From contig OZ287720.1 of assembly GCA_965649825.1 (NCBI GenBank), forward strand, positions 1 through 51,779: a stretch of DNA of 51,779 nt. Reading direction: 5' to 3'. Origin of the DNA: Penicillus capitatus (lineage: Eukaryota; Plantae; Chlorophyta). A program made the position numbers and the translations under genes. Positions within the stretch are counted from its first letter, which is position 1; the number at the start of each line of letters is the position of its first letter. Below are positions 40,690 through 51,779 of this stretch, piece after piece. The notes under the pieces were generated by a model. It had not been told where the DNA came from, searched no databases, and saw nothing but the letters and a program-made list of their open reading frames with translations.

Positions 40690-41043
40690 TCCAGAGGAGG
40701 TCACTCCCCAGATGGGGCGTTGATCCAAGAAGGCGTCAAGACATTTCTCCGTTAACAAGACTTTATGATTTGGCAAGACATTATTTTAAAAGCTCTCTTG
40801 CAGAAAAAGCGTATACCATGGGAAAATGATGTGGATTCAATGAATACGACATTGCTGTCGTGAATGCATCGTCGTCGTCATCGCGTGATAGGACTTTGAG
40901 TTTTCGAGCAGGGTAGATCCCGAATGGCGTGAGAATGGCTGTGCGCTGTTGGTGAACAAACACACGCATGCGCAGAATAATCTTAAAACTGAAAGCGTAA
41001 AGTGGGTTTTGATGCTGATGGACTGATTGTTGTGTTTTGGCAG

Positions 41044-42918
41044 TTTGATATGGTCGTTCAGATTCTGCCGTTTTTGATTCTGGGTCTGGGAATTGACGAT
41101 ACCTTTGTCATTATCGGCGCCTATCAGCGTGTCCCTGTCGATCTGCCTGTTCCAGAGAAGATTGCTCTGACACTGGAACGGGCAGGATCGTCGATCTTTG
41201 TCACATCAGCTACAGATTTCTGCGCTTTCCTCATGGGACTCTACACCAGACTCCCTGCTCTTTACCAATTCTCTGTTCATGCTTCATTGGCCATTCTTTT
41301 CGATTTTGGATTCCAAGTAAGTGCCTGTCCTTCTTGTTTGCGATCTGGCCTTCATTCGGATCGATCTGCCTTAGGTTACCTTTTTCGTAGCATTCCTCGT
41401 TTTGGACGCCAGAAGAGAAGCTAGATACCGTAACGGAAGTCCAAACTACGGCCTGAAGAGTTGCTGCGCCGACAGTCCCTACGACGAAGACAAAATCGTC
41501 AAAGCAGCACCAGAAGGCCAAGAAATGCGAACCACGTCCCCGGTCGAGCCAGAAAACGGACAGAAAGAGACGAGCACGCAAGCCTTTGTGAAGCATCCAG
41601 ACGCATGGAAGAAGATGTGTGGAGAAGGAGAATACAATCCAGAGACGCCGAGTTTTTCCACAAAGCTGGCTGGAACATACATCCCATCTGTCACATTGCA
41701 TCCCATCGGGCGCATCATCGTGATCGCCATCGAATGCGGTTTGCTCGCATGGGCCATCTACGGTTGCACCAAGGTCAAGATGAACTTCAACTACATCGAC
41801 ATGTTCACCCCAGACGATTCGCCGCTCAAAACAGCCTTCGATCTCGAGAACCAGTACTACAATGGCGATCAGCTCTTCTTCTCGGTCTACACGAAAGAGG
41901 CAGCGAGTGGAGACTACTTTAATCACCAGGATGAACTGGAACAGCTCAGGGTGAACTTGGATGCCGATCCGTACATTGTTGGTCCAGTGCACACATGGTC
42001 CGTAATTGCGTCACGAGTGTGCTCTTTCCTGAGCTGTGTCGGTGTCTTAGGTATGAGAGATATATCGCGTGGCTGCAAACGGATTCCGCCTACGAGGATC
42101 AGCTGACGGATGATGGTCTCCCTCCCGACTCCGATTCCTTCCACGACTGGCTGAAGGAATTCCTCCGTGGACCCGGCGCCGTTTTCAAGGACTTCGTGAT
42201 CTTCAGCAACGGATCCGATTCTCGCATCATCTCATCCAAGATCGATGCCGTCACGGTGGACATCGAGGACGGGCAACAGTCGATTGATCTCCTGGACAGT
42301 ATACGAGACACCATCGAAGACGCTGCGCCCTCTTTGGATCCCGTTCCCTTCTCCGTTGCCTTTCTCTTCTACGACGGTTTCCGTGTCATCACATGGGAGA
42401 CCATCCGCAACGTCATCATGGCTGGAGTGGGCGTCTTCGTCATGAATGTGATCGTCTTGGCCAGCATCCCTATGGCTGCCATCGTGGTGGGTATGGTGGC
42501 ATTGACAGATGTCATGCTGTTTGGATACATGTGGTATGTGGATCAGTATTTCAATCCCGTCACCGCCATCAATCTGGTCTTGGCTGTTGGTATCGCGGTG
42601 GACTATTCTGCACACATCGCGCATTCCTTTCTGGTTCTCTCTGGGGATCGTCCGAGTCGAGCCAGAGGAGCGCTCGAGCACATTGGTGGTGAAGTCATTT
42701 CTGGAGCCTTCACGACTTGGTTGGGCATTGTCATCATGGGCTTCACGGAGCACTACATCTTTCAATCCTTCTTCAAAATGTTCTTCGCCATCGTTGTCGC
42801 TGGAGCATGGCACGGCATCGTTTTCTTACCTGTTGTGTTGAGTTTCGTCGGGTCCGGCCCTTACCTCTCCAGGACGGGTGAAGAGAAGGTTTCCCGTTCA
42901 GTTGCTGCATCAAACTGA
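41044..42918 (+). CDS. Patched/NPC1-like sterol-sensing-domain membrane protein, apparently lacking its N-terminal half
   Basis: QILPFLILGLGIDDTFVI, GSSIFVTSATDFCAF, AVGIAVDYSAHIAH, FQSFFKMF, GAWHGIVFLPV. It begins at an intron-like acceptor (CAG 41041-41043) with no upstream exon found. Confidence 0.75.
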
Positions 42919-43098
42919 CTGCTGTCGAAACTGTTTATAGTACAGAACGCAAATGATGTTGTATTTTAGACTGTTTTTTGACATTCTGACGTGTCCATAA
43001 CATCCGGATCAAGGAACGAAAATTCTGAACGGTGTTGTTCTTTGTGTGCTGCAGGCTATGGGAGTATCCAGGACAGGTTTCTTCAGAACAGACGGAGA

Positions 43099-44186
43099 TC
43101 ATTTTCTTTCTTTGGGGGCAGCCCATTCGCAGTGCAGAATGAGATTGGAATAGCCATATCCGTCCAGCGTCTTGATCGCCCTTTCGGCATCCTCTCTGCA
43201 CCACTTGGCTGTCAGGGTCTTTCTTGTAGGGCATCGCACATCACCTTCTGCTGAAATTGATGAAAGCAAAGCCGCGGCTTCGGTTTGTTTCTTTGTCAAT
43301 GGCCAAGTAGATCCTCGAGATGTGGCCAAACGCAGAGAAGAGATCCTGTGGAGCAAGCAACATGGAGCGATGCCGACCGAGAAGCGTGATACGTGGAGAT
43401 CCTCTTCTGCCACTTCGTCTGACAGGTTCGTCACACGAACCGAGTTTTCGTTTCCTGGTCGTCGATACTTGTCATCTGCCACAGCATCCGGCCTCAAACG
43501 TGGTGGAACATACCTGACCACGCACACATCCAGTAGACGATGCCCTAGACGGAGCAGGCATACTTGTTGGGATTCGCCGCTCTGGCTGGCTCTTCTGCTT
43601 GCGTCTCAGGTTCGTCAGCTCCGGTGCGCCGGATGTCTTGCAGTCGACGCTCTTCTTTCTTCTGCTGCAACATGTTCTCCATTCTGCGCATAGTGCCATC
43701 GCCTTGCGCACGGAGAGGCAAGAGACAGAGGGATCGTCGCACTTCTTCACAACGGTCCTCTTATCTCCGTCCTCCAAACTTTTTTGAATGTCTTCGATTC
43801 TGTTCTGCTGCATCGTTTTGGTTTTGGTCCGCATGTTCTCAAACGGTATCTCTTCATTCGATGCAGCCGTCATGCTCTCGGCGCTTCGAGCTGCTGCCCC
43901 AAACTTCTCCCAGTCGCGACGCACTTGAGATATCTACGCCTATTCACATTGTCTGTGTCCCGAGAGGCGGACCCGAGTTTTCTGCCTTATAGACTTTCTG
44001 CTGGACAGAGGCGACACGAATCTTCGTCGTCTTCTTGATGGCCTGTCCCTTATCGTTGCGATAGTATTCGATCCTGAGTTTGATTCCGTGCTCGTCGACG
44101 GCGGTCTCTTCCGTCGGAGGGAGAAAGTCTTCGTCCTCTGGGTCTTCATCTCCCCAGCGACGTCGGTCGACGCGGGCGGCGGCCAT
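43099..44186 (-). CDS. EIF3G: Eukaryotic translation initiation factor 3 subunit G; multi-exon
   Basis: RWGDED...LPP, WEKFGAA, C-terminal RRM NSVRVTNLSDEV...AERAIKTLDGYGYSNLILHCEWA. Confidence 0.92.
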
Positions 44187-44453
44187 GGATGAAGGAATGT
44201 TGCGTGTAGGCTGTCGTGCGTTATGGATCGATCCAATTGCATTTCATTTTGGTCGACGATCCAGTCGAGACAATCCATCCAATCCTGCATGCGAATCGGG
44301 CATCCGGTCAGGTGGAGAGATCTTGACGCCGCCAATGGAAGGGAAGGGCGTTCGTGAAATGCACGAAAGCGAGAAGGGCGACGTGGCGTGGCAGGAGAGG
44401 CCATTGCTTCCACATGCGTCGCTGCAGAATGCCGATTTCATTGTGGCGGTTTG

Positions 44454-46096
44454 ATGGATTTGACCGTCGCGATGGGACATTTGCCCACAGAAGAGGTGTT
44501 GTGCAAGGATGCCGCGAAGAAAGAGGAAGCGCTCTGCATTGTGAAATGTTCATTTGTACTGAATCCCCAGGAGGATGGCTATCCAATCGAATCTGCATCG
44601 AACGGATTTCTCCATGCAGTGGAGAGGAAACGAAAAGACGTCATCGGAGAAAGCTGGAACTGTTTTGTGGTAAAGATCCCGCCGAGAAGAATCCAGTCGG
44701 TGAACATCGATACAGGATATGAATAGACGCGGCTCAGCCATTGAAGAGATGCTGGAAGCATTGCAGGAACGCAGAGCCATTGCTCGAATCCTGAACATCG
44801 TGAAGGGGAGCAACCCTTCCGAAGAGAGAGTCGTGAACCTGGTTCCTATATTCGACCACAGCCGACACACCTTGAAGTACCTTGGAAGGATCAGCACCGT
44901 GAGCGAAACGGAATCCTCTGCGGACGCGCTTCTGGAGAGAATATCCTCGCAGGTATGCTAACACTCAGCAGGGAAGATCGATGCCTTTGTGCTGAAGATG
45001 TGTGTATGTGCGCATAGGTACAGCATCACTTCCGGTGCTCACTACTGACAGAGGAGACGGCATCCGATAGCATCATTCTGTCAGCCAGTGCAGGTTTTGC
45101 AGAGCTAACAGGATTTGATCACAACGATGTCTATCGATCATCTTTTCTGGACCTCTGTGGTCCACTTCGAGAAAAAGACAATTGGAAGTCTTTGCGTTCA
45201 AGCAGAGAAGTGCTCGCGATGTCGTGGAGACCAATGCTGCTGTACAAGAAAGATGGTCATCCCTTCGAAGCGCTCGTCTTCACTTTTCCTCTTTGCTCGG
45301 CGCCGACCGGCTCCTTCGTCCATCAGTGTCTTCGAGTCGTCATCGATGTCACGGCTGCGCAGCCTGATCAGCTGGGAAACTATGTCCTTGGTCGATCCAT
45401 CGGCAGCGGTGCCAGTGGAATCGTCCGTATTGCAAAGTCCCTTGCAGGCGGTGGGCGATCCAACAAGAAGGCCCGTTTCTGTTTGTACTGGATCTCCTTG
45501 TTTGCGTGCATTAGATGAGATCGTGGCTGTCAAAGTGGTCGATGCAACGAAGTTCCGTAGCATCGCCGAGATCGAACTGATCCAGGATGAGATCAGGGCG
45601 CTGTCCAGTGTCAAACACGAGAATATTGTCAATCTGCGCGAAGTCCTTTTCGAAGACCACGTCTTCTACTTTGTCATGGATTTTGCCTCTGGCGGCTCTC
45701 TTGTGCTTCCATCCACCCTGTCCTTTCATTCTCATAAAACGCCTTTGCCTACAGGCACAACACGTGCGATCCAGAGACCCGTCTCTGCTGCCAGAGGAAG
45801 AGGCCAAAGAAATCTTTCGCCAAATCGCTGCAGCTGTCTCTTACTGTCATCGAAGGTGATGCCTGTATGCCATCCATGGCTGCACCCTTACCGAGAGATG
45901 CGCCAATGCAGACGGGTCATCCATCGGGATCTGAAGCCAGAGAACATTCTTCTCGATGCTCACGGTCGCGTTCAGGTTGCCGATTTTGGCCTGTCCGCCA
46001 TCGCTGCCCCATGTGGCAGTCTGTCGAGTGTCCGTGGCACTCCTGAGTTCCTCGCACCGGAGTTGATTTCTTCGAGTGAATTTGATGGAGCCTCGG
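44454..46096 (+). CDS. Two LOV-like PAS domains + SNF1/CAMK-type Ser/Thr kinase; 3'-truncated at the junction
   Basis: PAS1 EALCIVKCSFVL..GYPIESASNGF...VIG; PAS2 IILSASAGFAELTGF...YKKDGHPF; kinase GSGASGIV, VAVK, HRDLKPEN, DFG, GTPEFLAPE. Subdomains IX-XI are absent. The start and one splice site are uncertain. Confidence 0.8.
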
Positions 46097-46097
46097 A
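46088..46097. other. Eukaryote/bacterium sequence junction
   Basis: The intron-containing kinase (+) ends at ...EFDGAS and the bacterial TonB receptor (-) ends at ...KFTDYISE at the same point; both are truncated. Confidence 0.88.
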
Positions 46098-48053
46098 GAT
46101 GTAGTCGGTGAACTTGCTGTCATTGTAAGCGACTACACCGGTAAGGCTCAAACCCTCTAACGGTGTCAGCCAAAGTGCATCCAGTTCTATACCTTCGATT
46201 TTGGATGACCCAGCATTGTCAGTGGAAACAACTGGAGAGGCGACTCCATTGACCACCACTTCTTTTACAACAGATAGCTGCAGTTCGTCATAGTCGTAGC
46301 TATAGGCTGCACCGTTGATGCGAAGCGTATTGTCAAACCACTCCGACTTAAACCCGAGTTCAAAACCTGCAACCGTTTCGCTCAAGAATGAGTCATCGAT
46401 GGCGTCATCTGGATTCCCCGCAGTCACTGCTCGATCGAGATAGGAAGCGTTGAAGCCACCTGATTTGAAACCCTCTTTGTAATTTGCGAAAAAGTTCAGG
46501 TCATCCGTCGCATCCCAGGACACAGTGACCTCTGGCGAAAAGTTGTCTTCCGACAGTGAATCTGGATCCATATTGAATCTAGCGTCTGGCTGCCCAATGA
46601 ATCCACCTCCAGTGTCTCTTTCTTCATCGGTGTAACGACCACCGACCGACAATGAGAGCTTGTCTGTAATGTCGAGTTCTGCCTGGGCAAAAGCAGACCA
46701 AGAGCTCTGTCCAACATAAACCTCGCTGTCGGGAACGAGAGTAACACCTTGTGTAACCCAGACATTGCCGCCGGAGTCGGTCCTGCGGTCATCAACAAAC
46801 GCTCCTAACGTTGTGCGGAAGCGACCAAAGTCCCCTGAGAACCGCAGCTCCTGAGAAAACTGCTCGACGTCCACATATTGGGCAAAACCCAATATCTGGG
46901 ATGGGACGAGCGAGCGTTCAGCCACATTTCCGAAGTAGTAGTTATCAACATTGACGTAGCCCGTAATACTATGAACCGACCATTCGTCAGTTAGATCAAA
47001 CGAGGCATCCAAAGTGATTTGCGCAAGTTTATAGTCTTGCGTTGGTTTATCTGCCGCCTGAGTAGCTGGGGCTGTCTGAAAGTTCACGATGTTTAAGACA
47101 TCATCGTTCGATGTGAACGGTGCTGTAGCGAAAGTGTCATTTAAGGTACAGTCCGAATATGGATTGTCGACTAACACATCATCGCCACAAACAAAGTTCT
47201 GGACCTGATTGTACTGTCCACCTTCGCGATGGCCGTACAGAGCTTTCAGTACAACTTCACCGCGATCGAATTCACCTCTAAGCGTTCCGATACCCAAAAT
47301 GTCAGAATAGTTGGGACCTTTGTCGTTGAAAGGCTGTGCAACAGTTGGGTCGTCCTCATCACCATCACCGAACGTGTTTGTGAAAAAGCCTTCGGAATCT
47401 TGTCCTTTGACAGCCAGACGCGCACCCCAGTTTTCACTTAGCGGCCCGGAAATGATACCGTGTCCATAGACACGTTCGCCATTGAACTCGTACCCGGTTT
47501 GAACCTCTGTGAAGAACTCATCGGTCGGCATCTTTGTGCGAACGGCGATAATTCCGCCAGGACTGTTCTTTCCAAAGAACAGCGCCTGCGGCCCTTTCAG
47601 AACCTCAATGGCTTCAACATCAAAAAGGCCATACCTGAAAATCTGGGACGAGCTGTGCGCAACACCGTCCATGACGACTGAAACAGGTTCATCGCTCATA
47701 GCGTTGATGTCGTTACCCGTAACGCCGCGAAGCGAGATCTTTGGGTTGAGCGTGCCTTCCGTGTAGACGCTGAGCCCCGCAACAAGACTGTTCAAGTCCT
47801 TGAAGTTAGATGTTCCCAAGGCTTCAAGCACCTCAGAATCAAATGCCTGAACAACCACCGGCACATCTTGAAGACTTTCTTCCTGCTTTCGCGCCTCAAC
47901 AACAATTGTATCGAGCTTACGTGAAGAGGCTTCCCCAGCGGCCTCCTCAACCTTTGCGGCCTCGCCATTGTCTGTTTGCGCAAATGCTCCGGACACCAGG
48001 ATAGGTGCAGTTGCCGCAGCCACAAAAAGTGACTTCTTTGTCATTCTTTTCAA
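46097..48053 (-). CDS. TonB-dependent outer-membrane receptor, C-terminally truncated
   Basis: Signal peptide, TonB box DTIVVEA, plug motif IEVLKGPQALFFGKNSPGGII, beta-barrel strands. TTG start with GGAGG 6 nt upstream. No terminal barrel strand or aromatic C-terminus. Confidence 0.92.
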
Positions 48054-48263
48054 AGTATTCCTCCCGACAGCGCCATTCCCCGATGACGCTTTTCATTGTG
48101 CTCAATTGTCGGCAGCCTCAGGCGATAGCGCGCATGAAGACTCCTACTTTCGTAACCTCGCACACTTATTGGATCGATCGGAGAAACGATTAGTTAGGCA
48201 AAACCTTCCCGATAATTGGGCGGATCATTTGCTTCTCATAGCTAAACAATAGGCTTCTCACCG

Positions 48264-48280
48264 ACCTTGAGGCTCAAGGT
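48264..48280. promoter_or_regulatory. Perfect dyad ACCTTGAG-G-CTCAAGGT, candidate transcription-factor operator
   Basis: An 8-1-8 inverted repeat in the divergent intergenic region between the receptor and LysR genes. Confidence 0.35.
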
Positions 48281-48621
48281 GGATGGCGACAACTCCTTGA
48301 TGCAAGTCATTCGACAGCTCGAGATAGTCTTAGTTGTAAAGGATGAAGTCACTGGATTGGTCGATCAGTGACGCGCAACGACTGTTTATCACCCAACTAG
48401 TACGTGTAGAATAAATGGAGACGATAATGCGACCTGCATCTATTTGCCAAAGGCAGGAACGCGCTCCTCGCCACGGACGCATAATCATGTTGGCGACTGA
48501 ATCTGGCAATATAAAAGCACCTTGTGTCATGACCAGTGAATTGATGATTCACATGCCATTGGAAGGCCTTGAATAACCAACGGAAAACCAAAAAAAACAA
48601 ACCCAAAACGGTACTTGAAGA

Positions 48622-49539
48622 ATGAAACCCAACCCACGCTCTGCACCACTCAACCCGCTTCGCACTTTTGCGATTGCTGCCCGACATAGTACTTTCACTG
48701 CCGCTGCGCAGGAAATGAACATTAGCCAGGTTGGGGTGAGTCGGCAGATTGCGATTTTGGAAGACTACCTCGGCGTGAAACTGTTCGAAAGGAGAACGAG
48801 TTCTGCGAAGCTCACTGAGGTGGGAAGAGCTTTTGGCGCCCAAATATCTCCGCTCTTTGACAAGATCGAAATCCTTACCCAGGACCTGAGAGGACTGGCG
48901 AAGGAGACGATGATCAACATTCGTTCCTACCCCACCTTTATCAATTACTGGCTAGTTCCCCGGATTTCCGGTTTTAGTGAGAAACACCCGGACTTTGACA
49001 TCAGTTTCGACGTCAAGATCGAACGGTTGGATTTTAGCAAAGCTCATCTCGATTTCGCGATCCAACTTGGAAATGGCAAGTGGAGAGACTGCGACGCAAG
49101 GGTTCTGTTCCCTGAAGAGGTCGACCTTATATGCAGCCCTGATTATTTAGAGCGAATTGGGGGAGTGAGCACCGCGAAAGACATCAACAAAGCCACACTG
49201 CTCTACCCCTATTACAGACAGAGAATGCTGTTTGAGAAATGGGCCAAGATCAACGGAGTTGAAGACCTCAACCCGCAACACGGTTTCCACTGTAAAGAAT
49301 CGACGACCGCGTATGAAGCAGCCTTCAATGGCGTGGGCATGTGTATGGCCCAGCTTGTATTTGTTGAGCAGGCGCTCAAAGACGGCAGGCTTGTTCGACC
49401 TATCCCTACGAAAATTGATACGAACGCTCAGTTCTGGATCGTGTGGCCAAACAATCGCTCCATTAGTCTGAAAGCGAAACGCGCTATCGATTGGATTCTT
49501 GAAACGTCTGGACAGCCCAAGCAGTTTTTCAAAGATTAG
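48622..49539 (+). CDS. LysR-family transcriptional regulator, GcvA/AmpR-like
   Basis: PLNPLRTFAIAARHSTFTAAAQEMNISQVGVSRQIAILEDYLGVKLFER HTH; WLVPRISGFSEKHPD; G.G.A; 305 aa. Confidence 0.95.
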   Translation: MKPNPRSAPLNPLRTFAIAARHSTFTAAAQEMNISQVGVSRQIAILEDYLGVKLFERRTSSAKLTEVGRAFGAQISPLFDKIEILTQDLRGLAKETMINIRSYPTFINYWLVPRISGFSEKHPDFDISFDVKIERLDFSKAHLDFAIQLGNGKWRDCDARVLFPEEVDLICSPDYLERIGGVSTAKDINKATLLYPYYRQRMLFEKWAKINGVEDLNPQHGFHCKESTTAYEAAFNGVGMCMAQLVFVEQALKDGRLVRPIPTKIDTNAQFWIVWPNNRSISLKAKRAIDWILETSGQPKQFFKD

Positions 49540-49780
49540 GGCGCTGTGAAAAAAAACGACCTGTATCTCCACGCGGTGTGCGGAGCTACCCTGCCCGGCA
49601 TACAACCATCAATCGTTCGCGACTTCAAAACGCCCGCCCCGGACCGATCAGGAGACGCCCGGATTGCAACGCTTCTCCTTGACGTTCATTTGCCGGAATT
49701 CATTTCGCAATTGCCCAACAACTAAATGACAATGCAACGCACTTGCCGAGTGTTGGATTGAACGCTATTCGCTGGCTGCG

Positions 49781-50200
49781 ATGATACAACGGGGCTCCAT
49801 AACACAGTTTAGACGACACAAAGTCCTGCTCGCGATCACCCTTATGGTGGTCGCGATGCGTGCGTTGGTGCCGGCGGGTTGGATGTTTACGCCGTCCGAG
49901 CATGATGGCGGTCTACATCTGGAGATATGTGGCGGCCATTGGGAAGACTGGGATCCTTCATACAGCGTCTTTGAAACAAATGAAGACGACCAACAGGACC
50001 CGCTGAACAATGAAGGCGAGCAATCATTCAGCTGCCCATATGCGCTGACGAGCCTTTCCATCTCTACGGAGATGACCACCGAATCTGATGCACGTCTTGC
50101 TTTAACCGGAAAACCGACCCGGCCATATGTGCGCGGGCCGCCGGTGGATCGCCGAAACCAACCCGTCCTACCCGCACGAGGCCCCCCGCTCTTTCTCTGA
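49781..50200 (+). CDS. DUF2946-family (CruR-like) small protein / putative regulatory upstream ORF
   Basis: N-terminal hydrophobic helix with RALVPAGWM, LEICGGH, central CPYA, C-terminal PARGPP; lies directly upstream of a TonB-dependent receptor. Confidence 0.78.
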   Translation: MIQRGSITQFRRHKVLLAITLMVVAMRALVPAGWMFTPSEHDGGLHLEICGGHWEDWDPSYSVFETNEDDQQDPLNNEGEQSFSCPYALTSLSISTEMTTESDARLALTGKPTRPYVRGPPVDRRNQPVLPARGPPLFL

Positions 50201-50263
50201 CACATCCACCATTCAATTGTCAGCGAGCGTCGAAACACGCTCATTTGAAGAGTATCAGAAGAA

Positions 50264-51779
50264 ATGAAACTGAGTTTTTCAGGCTCCAGCGCGAGCCTTG
50301 TCGCCTTGGCCTGCGCCCTGGGTGCGCCAGGTGTCGTCTGTGCGGATGAAGCCGAACGGGTTGAAGACACGATTGTCGTCACCGGCCAAAAACTGCAGGA
50401 AAGAGACCTGCAGACATTGTCGACACCAGCTCTGGGAGTCGGCGTTAGTGCGGATCAGATAGATGCGATCAACGCGTTGAACGTGGAGGATTCGCTTCGA
50501 TATGCACCGAACATGATTGTTCGCAAACGCTTTATCGGTGACGCAAATGCTACTCTGATCCTAAGGGGTGGACATTCTCAACAAACACCTTGGGCGCTTG
50601 TTCAGGTGGATGGTTTTACGATCTCCAACTTCCTGGGCGCCAGTTGGGATACGGCCCCCAAATGGGCGCTCACTGCTCCTGGCGATGTCGAACGCGTCGA
50701 AGTTGTCTATGGCCCGACATCCGCACGTTACTCCGGCAACACCATTGGCGGCGCTCTTCTTCTCGAAACGCGGGAGATTGAGGAAAACCGAGCTTTCATG
50801 AGCGCTCAGCTGATCGAGGGCGAATATGATTACTACCAAACCGACCACGCTCTGGATGGATGGGCTGTTGATGGCGGTTTTGACGCCCGATTGAACGACC
50901 GCGCCGCAGTCTCTTTTAGTTATCGTCACTTCCAAAATGAAGGCCAGCCGCAAATGTGGCGGACGATTTCCGGCAGCTCGGAATATGCCGATCAGGCGGT
51001 GAGAGACAATACACTGGGTTTTCTGCGAATTGCCGCAGAAGACAGCGTGGTTGCGACTGAAGAAGACCAGTTCCGAATGCGCGGCGAATATGATTTCGGC
51101 GGTAACTGGGAAGGACGCGCCCTCATCGGTGTGCTCAAAGACACAAACAACTACCTCAACCCTCAAACCTTTATCGTCGACGCTGAAGGTGAACCGACGT
51201 TTCAGGACATATCCGGCGTCTCTGCGCGTAGTAGTGAAACAATCGAACGCTTGATAGGACTTGGCCTGCGCGGTGAAGCGGCTGGATGGAAGCTCGATTT
51301 CGCTCTTAGCCGCTTTGACGTTCTTAAGGGACAAAGCTCGCGTTCCGACAATTTTAGTCAAGCCAGCAATTGGCTGACGCCGCTTGATGGAACAATCACC
51401 TTCACAGACGGCACGGCCTGGACAACATTAGACGCCAGCGCGGAGCAGAGCTTTGGAACGCATTCCATTGCTACCGGGCTGTCTTATCAGGACTATCGGT
51501 TCAAGAGCCGCCGTCATGACAGCGCTGACTGGCATGCGGGCCGGATTGGTGAACTGCTGGACGGCTCTGGAGGAAACACACAGCTTCTGGGCGTGTTTGT
51601 CGAAGACTCAATCGCCTTCACCGACAAATGGATCGCGACTTTGGGACTGCGCACAGAAACCTGGGAAGCTTCCGATGGGTTGCTCATCAACGGGTCGCAG
51701 CTTGTCGCATACCAGGATCGCACGGAAAACGCCCTATCTCCTAAAGCCGCACTGTCTTTTGCACCCGATGGGAATTGGG
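50264..51779 (+). CDS. TonB-dependent receptor (partial, runs off the window; absent from the ORF track)
   Basis: Manual translation MKLSFSGSSASLVALACALGAPGVVCADEAERVEDTIVVTGQK...EDSLRYAPNMIVRKRFIGD...VERVEVVYGPTSARYSGNTIGG. Confidence 0.9.
   Translation, partial: MKLSFSGSSASLVALACALGAPGVVCADEAERVEDTIVVTGQKLQERDLQTLSTPALGVGVSADQIDAINALNVEDSLRYAPNMIVRKRFIGDANATLILRGGHSQQTPWALVQVDGFTISNFLGASWDTAPKWALTAPGDVERVEVVYGPTSARYSGNTIGGALLLETREIEENRAFMSAQLIEGEYDYYQTDHALDGWAVDGGFDARLNDRAAVSFSYRHFQNEGQPQMWRTISGSSEYADQAVRDNTLGFLRIAAEDSVVATEEDQFRMRGEYDFGGNWEGRALIGVLKDTNNYLNPQTFIVDAEGEPTFQDISGVSARSSETIERLIGLGLRGEAAGWKLDFALSRFDVLKGQSSRSDNFSQASNWLTPLDGTITFTDGTAWTTLDASAEQSFGTHSIATGLSYQDYRFKSRRHDSADWHAGRIGELLDGSGGNTQLLGVFVEDSIAFTDKWIATLGLRTETWEASDGLLINGSQLVAYQDRTENALSPKAALSFAPDGNW

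Follow-up and report, generated by a model that had tools for sequence, protein, structure and literature searches.

A spliced green-algal gene predicted to encode two degenerate LOV-type domains fused to a CAMKL kinase

The window analysed here is a stretch of 51,779 nucleotides from the green alga Penicillus capitatus (GenBank assembly GCA_965649825.1, contig OZ287720.1, positions 1 to 51,779 of the forward strand). Towards its end lies a spliced eukaryotic gene on the + strand, running from 44359 or 44454, depending on the start model, to 46092, whose predicted product carries two tandem PAS domains of the LOV type (PAS1 and PAS2) followed by a Ser/Thr kinase domain. The gene was delineated by a three-frame reading of 44454-46104, with open stretches joined at GT..AG boundaries. 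Two related algal contigs carry the same gene: L001 (European Nucleotide Archive (ENA) accession ERZ25074695), which is 99.06% identical to the window over 41008-46092, and L002 (ENA ERZ26696514, 1.23 Mb), which comes from a more distant alga and is 84% identical over 41009-46092. With a start at 44454, the exons are 44454-44669, 44716-44952, 45018-45450, 45515-45702, 45755-45855 and 45912 onward, all on the + strand, separated by five GT..AG introns of 46-65 nt, and the product has 453 amino acids. The features of the locus, with the 5' end as we would now draw it, are:

44359 to 44448, + strand: proposed coding exon 1 (MHESEKGDVAWQERPLLPHASLQNADFIVA), upstream of the 44454 start; predicted, with moderate confidence
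44449 to 44507, + strand: proposed 59-nt intron (GTTTGA...GCAAG), which contains the ATG at 44454
44508 to 44669, + strand: exon with the A'alpha helix and the first half of PAS1, including the degenerate GESWNCFV
44670 to 44715: GT..AG intron, kept in L001 and L002
44716 to 44952, + strand: exon encoding the rest of PAS1 and the beginning of the helix between the domains
about 44541 to 44907, + strand: PAS1 overall
45018 to 45450, + strand: single exon with the whole of PAS2 (about 45018-45362, RSSFLDLCGP), the glycine loop of the kinase (whose domain starts at about 45381) and, between them, a 7-residue linker; continuous open reading frame, Pfam matches
45515 to 45702, + strand: kinase exon with the VAVK lysine, the alphaC glutamate and the hinge
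45755 to 45855, + strand: kinase exon covering alphaD-alphaE, up to CHRR
45912 to 46092, + strand: kinase exon with HRDLKPEN, DFG, the activation segment and APE, severed by an assembly join; last residues ...SSSEFDGA

An earlier note, made from the sequence of the window, had asked whether the PAS and kinase exons might belong to separate transcripts. One exon, 45018-45450, contains the final PAS2 strand together with the 7-residue linker and the glycine loop, so PAS2 and the kinase cannot be separate genes; PAS1 is connected to the rest through a conserved intron, and transcript-derived homologues (an MMETSP transcript and Nephroselmis AML77883.1) show the same domain order. At the start of the PAS2 exon there are two in-frame AG acceptors 6 bases apart, 45018 and 45024 (catAG|GTACAG|CAT), both of which are retained in the L002 orthologue, and a Val-Gln pair may thus be optionally included at this point.

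The kinase part of the window matches the Pfam Pkinase profile with an E-value of 6.5e-48 over profile positions 1-174 of 263, while the L001 gene has the complete domain (1-263 of 263) together with two PAS_9 matches and no other recognisable Pfam domain. When the full kinase domain of the intact L001 allele was compared with PDB sequences, CIPK23 was the best match (1.3e-55), followed by AMPK alpha2 and alpha1, MARK1-4, SIK3, SNRK, Snf1 and MELK; the matches to CIPK23, AMPK, MARK, SIK3 and Snf1 fall between 1e-55 and 1e-46. The catalytic lysine, the alphaC glutamate, HRDLKPEN and DFG are all intact, and the activation segment from DFG to APE is 27 residues long, with no insert. Judged from its sequence, the kinase is of the CAMKL class (SnRK/AMPK/CIPK-like) and not a phototropin AGC-VIII kinase, in agreement with the first description of the locus, which had called it SNF1/CIPK/CAMK-like with a DFG and a short activation loop. 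In the green lineage, the role of LOV-kinase photoreceptor is assigned to phototropins. They resemble the window protein in carrying tandem LOV-type domains N-terminal to a Ser/Thr kinase; their kinase, however, belongs to AGC VIII and has DFD and an activation-loop insert, where the window protein has DFG and none.

That the two N-terminal domains are of the LOV type, as had been proposed by eye, is borne out by profile, sequence and structure comparisons. Pfam finds PAS_9 twice in the product (E 3.7e-11; 43.7 bits, where the cut-off is 27 bits), and for both domains the best PDB sequence matches are phototropin LOV domains (E 6e-5 to 1e-3), ahead of LOV histidine kinases, aureochromes and the PAS domains of EAG channels; the NCBIfam matches are to YtvA and LOV histidine-kinase models. 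An AlphaFold2 model of residues 1-282, computed with a 16-sequence family alignment, contains two PAS folds joined by a helix at 141-156 (mean predicted local distance difference test score 85.4, predicted template modelling score 0.84). The top Foldseek match of this model is the LOV-PAS module of the Brucella LOV histidine kinase (LOV-HK; 1.9e-13), with other tandem-PAS proteins next, and single LOV2 domains match it at a target-normalised TM-score (template modelling score) of 0.71. The linker between PAS2 and the kinase is only 7 residues long, a short and rigid coupling to the N-lobe, and in the AlphaFold2 model the stretch from the final PAS2 strand to kinase beta1 contains no helix; this is a further difference from phototropins, in which Jalpha follows LOV2.

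To read off the residues at the key positions, we built a LOV hidden Markov model (HMM) from canonical sequences and used Avena LOV2 numbering, whose register the position of C450 confirms. In PAS1, GESWNCFVD aligns with GRNCRFLQG without gaps both in MAFFT and in the LOV HMM, so that positions 449-454 read S-W-N-C-F-V in place of the canonical N-C-R-F-L-Q and a tryptophan occupies the place of the adduct-forming cysteine; the cysteine of WNC sits two positions downstream of it. PAS2 has S-F-L-D-L-C at 449-454, with phenylalanine as the adduct residue (RSSFLDLCG). The observation of the earlier note that GESWNCFVD and YRSSFLDLCG have taken the place of the photoactive motif, and that neither domain has the adduct cysteine, therefore holds in the same register by both methods. 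The losses are not confined to this position: in PAS1 the LOV HMM places asparagine, valine, leucine and isoleucine at the equivalents of R451, Q454, R467 and Q513, and in PAS2 leucine, alanine and valine at those of N482, N492 and Q513. Against the LOV HMM PAS1 scores 26.6 bits and PAS2 22.8 bits, compared to 165-186 bits for canonical LOV1 domains of the same protein family (described below). The second species, L002, keeps both the tryptophan and the downstream cysteine in PAS1 (KSWSCFVD), and its FLDLCGP motif is identical. Unlike phototropins, which have the adduct cysteine and the flavin-contacting residues, the window protein lacks the cysteine and most of the flavin-contacting residues in both domains; a classic LOV photocycle is very unlikely on these grounds, and we infer that flavin binding has been lost in both domains.

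The first description had left room for a flavin-based sensor without the classic photocycle. This seems unlikely, because the phosphate- and isoalloxazine-contacting residues (the R451, Q454, R467 and Q513 equivalents) are gone from PAS1. The same residues bear on the view that the protein is still a flavin photoreceptor, working either through the out-of-register cysteine of WNC or through cysteine-independent photoreduction of the flavin, a reaction that engineered Cys-less LOV proteins do show. Two residues downstream of the adduct position there is an Asn-Cys dipeptide (Ser-Cys in the related species), the equivalent of N482 is retained, the overall fold is LOV-like, and other members of the family have a fully canonical LOV1, all of which speak for such a receptor. 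With both the phosphate anchors and the signalling glutamine replaced, a bulky tryptophan at the adduct position and an LOV-HMM score far below that of the canonical relatives, we nonetheless give this explanation little credence.

As for the 5' end, the start at 44454 is probably wrong because it gives the L002 orthologue an in-frame TGA at codon 17, which falls within the proposed 59-nt intron. An ATG at 44359 opens a reading frame that runs up to a GT donor at 44449, and an AG acceptor at 44507 restores the frame; the upstream reading frame, the donor and the acceptor are all kept in L001 and L002, and the exons flanking the intron align between these two without gaps. The revised 5' exon also restores the N-terminal motif of the family, PW..RP......QDASF (here AWQERPLLPHASLQNADF). 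A start at 44359 with an extra 59-nt intron is thus probably the better model. The stop codon of the upstream reading frame overlaps the formerly assumed ATG (TGATG). The 267 bp (44187-44453) that separate the kinase gene from a divergent eIF3g gene show about 90% identity between the two species, whose coding synonymous divergence (dS) is 0.42; the first coding exon of the kinase gene probably takes up part of this spacer.

At the other end, the gene is cut by a junction between algal and bacterial DNA, beyond which the following features lie:

46088 to 46093, no strand: chimeric alga-bacterium junction with a short shared GGAGCC; the match to L001 and L002 ends at 46092
46093 to 48053, − strand: bacterial TonB-dependent receptor, C-terminally truncated (Pfam Plug and beta-barrel, the latter over positions 25-353 of 436)
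48622 to 49539: LysR regulator within the bacterial tail

We conclude that the contig is chimeric at 46092, since the kinase and the receptor are both severed mid-domain at a six-base shared string and both relatives continue collinearly. Past the equivalent of 46092, L001 reads ...FDGAIADIWSMGVV..., followed by one more intron and a final exon, and L002 is collinear with L001 well beyond both breakpoints of the window. The apparent 3' end of the kinase gene is an assembly artefact. Of the locus as first drawn (44454-46096), the elements are hence present, while the start probably lies at 44359 and the end is the chimeric join at 46092. The truncated receptor, of which 653 of 830 amino acids are present in the window, is 74% identical to a receptor from a metagenome-assembled genome of the Parvularculaceae, and the flank from 46093 onward is, on sequence similarity, that of a Parvularculaceae-like bacterium. 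Horizontal transfer was considered as an origin of this flank and is ruled out: in either gene the cut falls inside a domain, and two independent contigs of algal origin stay collinear past the join. The bacterial part makes up the last 5.7 kb of the window (46088-51779) and has further open reading frames beside the receptor and the LysR gene.

The intact relatives also allow the state of the gene to be assessed. With the revised 5' model, the L001 and L002 reading frames are both intact, with 667 codons, and their eight exons align gaplessly, with every GT and AG conserved. Ratios of non-synonymous to synonymous substitution (dN/dS), estimated by the method of Nei and Gojobori for L001 against L002 (dS 0.42), were 0.09 for the kinase, 0.39 for PAS1, 0.45 for PAS2, 0.71 for the inter-domain helix and 0.67 for the C-terminal tail. 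Because the exons are gapless, the splice sites conserved and the kinase ratio low, the gene is evidently maintained, with the kinase strongly and the PAS domains moderately constrained.

These results bear directly on the possibility that we are looking at a decaying gene or pseudogene, or at an artefact of unrelated exons stitched together. Such a view could draw on the truncation of the gene in the window, on the in-frame stop that L002 acquires when exon 1 starts at 44454, and on the comparison of the window with L001, where 9 non-synonymous and 5 synonymous differences are found and the divergence of the coding sequence equals that of the introns. The truncation is, however, the assembly join, past which L001 and L002 are collinear; the revised model leaves no stop and no indels in either relative, while all GT and AG sites are conserved and the kinase is under strong constraint; and PAS2 shares one exon with the kinase glycine loop. 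Decay or artefact is therefore extremely unlikely in our view.

To place the protein among its relatives, we ran an exhaustive HMMER search of 1.84 billion representative sequences, using a profile of PAS2, the linker and the start of the kinase, together with cluster look-ups; word-indexed searches had been uninformative (1 match for the PAS2-linker alignment, 0 for the LOV1 region of Astrephomene). About 30 proteins match the whole profile, and these full-span matches are the best matches with a single pair of PAS domains in the searched set. The family spreads over Mesostigma, Nephroselmis, Pedinophyceae, Ulva, Bryopsis, trebouxiophytes and volvocines. In a separate homology search the top homologues, at 189-315 bits, are green-algal hypothetical proteins with PAS_9 and Pkinase from Bryopsis, [Myrmecia] bisecta, Tetrabaena, Trebouxia and Volvox, whereas ordinary CAMK-type kinases score at most 171 bits there; the nearest named relative of the alga in the window is Bryopsis (BSKO_11127). 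Members go under a variety of labels: "LOV domain-containing protein" in UniRef for Astrephomene GFR43165.1 and for an entry from Apatococcus, "putative LOV domain-containing protein" for Nephroselmis olivacea AML77883.1, "AMP-activated protein kinase" for Gonium pectorale BAU61589/90, "OSK3" in Scenedesmus and "hypothetical protein" for Chlamydomonas reinhardtii Cre06.g251050 (PNW81547.1). Ulva mutabilis UM060_0111.1, Mesostigma viride Mv21778 and a protein of a Pedinophyceae sp. are members as well.

The window protein aligns with this family throughout. They share the domain order, the short linker and the CAMKL kinase, and the link between PAS2 and the kinase, DVT-x7/8-G-x-Y, has a fixed length in all members. 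The PAS2 signature (SxGF..LTG, LCGP and YKKDG.PFW) is invariant in the family alignment, and the window protein matches it except in PFEA, where W is replaced by E. The family also has in common a C-terminal motif, H(D/E)S(V/A)KL; in the full-length L001 allele HESAKLTLGDW aligns to HESVKLVLGDW of Bryopsis, while the window is severed before the motif. What varies is the first domain. In Tetrabaena, Astrephomene, P0125 and P0126 LOV1 is fully canonical (NC[RKSN]xLQ, R/K467, N482, N492, Q513), and in Nephroselmis it is canonical except for Q513T; one of the canonical domains matches the LOV domains of LOV histidine kinases, aureochromes and phototropins at 1e-26 to 1e-22. LOV1 is partly eroded in Mesostigma (Cys to Pro), Gonium and Chlamydomonas (GRNSNVLQ, Cys to Ser), and the first domain is fully eroded in the alga of the window, Pedinophyceae, Myrmecia and several environmental sequences. 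With its 26.6 bits, the first domain of the window protein is thus among the most degenerate, whereas in several other members LOV1 is canonical and probably still photoactive, and the N-terminal extension of these proteins is longer. PAS2, for its part, is without the flavin-contacting residues in every member examined, though many still have a cysteine at the adduct position.

The earlier note had called the architecture undescribed. This does not stand, as some 30 representative green-algal proteins share the layout and the layout of PAS kinase (PASK) is formally alike: the family is catalogued, widespread in green algae and uncharacterised, and the layout itself is not new. No functional study or description of the architecture was found in the literature on LOV domains and CAMK or SnRK kinases in algae, although a survey of LOV proteins outside the texts read could list it. 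The Gonium accessions BAU61589/90 and BAU61612/13 resemble those of the mating-locus sequencing records. In Chlamydomonas, Cre06.g251050 was detected in cilia with a methylated arginine in a study of the ciliary methylome, the sole literature mention found, and it belongs to a co-expression cluster that is induced in minus gametes on mating activation (PMC11244166). The family may have a tie to mating or ciliary signalling.

The formal likeness to PASK raises the question of whether the gene might be an algal orthologue of PAS kinase (PASK/Psk1), a metabolite sensor with no LOV ancestry. PASK (human PASK, yeast Psk1 and Psk2) combines PAS domains with a kinase of the CAMKL family, so that an N-terminal PAS part and a CAMKL kinase are found in the same arrangement as here. 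Both PAS domains of the window protein match LOV domains best, however, and no specific similarity to PASK was detected in either part, with no PASK PAS-A among the 60 PDB sequences listed at E<=10 and no PASK among the 60 best PDB kinase matches (CIPK, AMPK, MARK, SIK, SNRK, Snf1, MELK). In addition, the algal relatives carry a bona fide LOV1, and PAS2 abuts the kinase in the window protein, unlike in PASK, whose PAS domains lie far from its kinase. We thus regard orthology with PASK as very improbable. Like PASK, in which PAS sensor domains regulate a CAMKL-family kinase, the window protein is likely to work with a non-photochemical PAS input. A further comparison is with LOV-HK of Brucella abortus (PDB 6ph3, 6pps, 6ph4), which has the same order of LOV domain, helical linker, non-flavin PAS domain and kinase; it differs in that it is bacterial, has a histidine-kinase output and a photoactive LOV domain.

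Taken together, we suggest with moderate confidence that the gene encodes an active kinase, a light-blind member of a green-lineage family of LOV-PAS-CAMKL kinases, gated by its PAS domains, whose input is no longer blue light. The layout of the family would be LOV1, a helical linker, a degenerate LOV/PAS2, a linker of 7 to 8 residues, the CAMKL kinase and a tail. We speculate that PAS2, which is fused nearly directly to kinase beta1 with no Jalpha between, gates the kinase N-lobe by cis-inhibition and/or dimerisation, and that PAS1 and the connecting helix modulate this PAS2 gate. In members with a canonical LOV1 the input would be blue light; in the alga of the window it may be a protein partner, a small hydrophobic ligand or phosphorylation, or else the module may act as a constitutive scaffold.

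Several points weigh against a light-blind, PAS-gated kinase. The proposed gating is an analogy with phototropin LOV2, the PAS-A domain of PASK and Brucella LOV-HK, not a result. The dN/dS of about 0.4 in the PAS domains indicates moderate constraint only, and the differences between the window and L001, 9 non-synonymous and 5 synonymous in 1353 nt of coding sequence, are too few to interpret, the comparison being underpowered, though hardly reassuring. PAS1 moreover retains the equivalent of N482, and in the MAFFT alignment that of N492 too (not in the HMM alignment), and it keeps the Asn-Cys dipeptide, albeit two residues out of register.

A wider version of the same idea, which we put forward tentatively, is that the green lineage may have a second, so far unrecognised line of LOV photoreceptor kinases, of which this gene would be a blind branch. 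This second line would date back to the divergence of Mesostigma from the chlorophytes and would have the tandem-LOV module in common with phototropins but a different class of kinase; the photoactive cysteine would have disappeared several times, in Chlamydomonas among others, and the protein kept as a sensor for some other input.

The genes next to the kinase gene are eukaryotic, with a divergent eIF3g gene directly upstream and a Patched/sterol-sensing-like gene farther upstream. The window has neither an rRNA gene nor an organelle marker. Divergence between the window and L001 is uneven along this part: 14 differences fall in the 1353 coding nucleotides of the kinase gene, against 1 in the neighbouring Patched-like exon (924 nt, 41995-42918). 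A second breakpoint, absent from L001 and L002, lies at about 41008 and cuts the Patched/sterol-sensing-like gene. Positions 1-363 of the window resemble L001 368-1, reversed, with 88.6% identity; a repeat or a mis-join is the suggested cause. Elsewhere in the window, an intronless open reading frame of 1735 amino acids at 5633-10840 (+ strand) codes for a NACHT NTPase with about 25 HEAT repeats behind it, an arrangement like that of an NLR; the long antisense open reading frames opposite this gene, at 7534-8472 and 8506-9276, are probably by-products of the repeats.

The contig that carries the gene is chimeric and the apparent 3' end of the gene artefactual, which calls for caution when this window is used; the gene itself is of moderate interest and ordinary as a locus, while the family is worth experimental attention. 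Apart from phototropins, a separate green-algal family fuses a tandem LOV-type module to an AMPK/SnRK-like kinase. Where LOV1 is canonical, as in Nephroselmis, Tetrabaena, Astrephomene and several environmental sequences, the protein is a candidate for a CAMKL kinase regulated by blue light and a potential optogenetic part. The window protein and Cre06.g251050 may be viewed as natural experiments on what becomes of a LOV module after its chromophore chemistry has been lost, and of these the Chlamydomonas orthologue is experimentally tractable.

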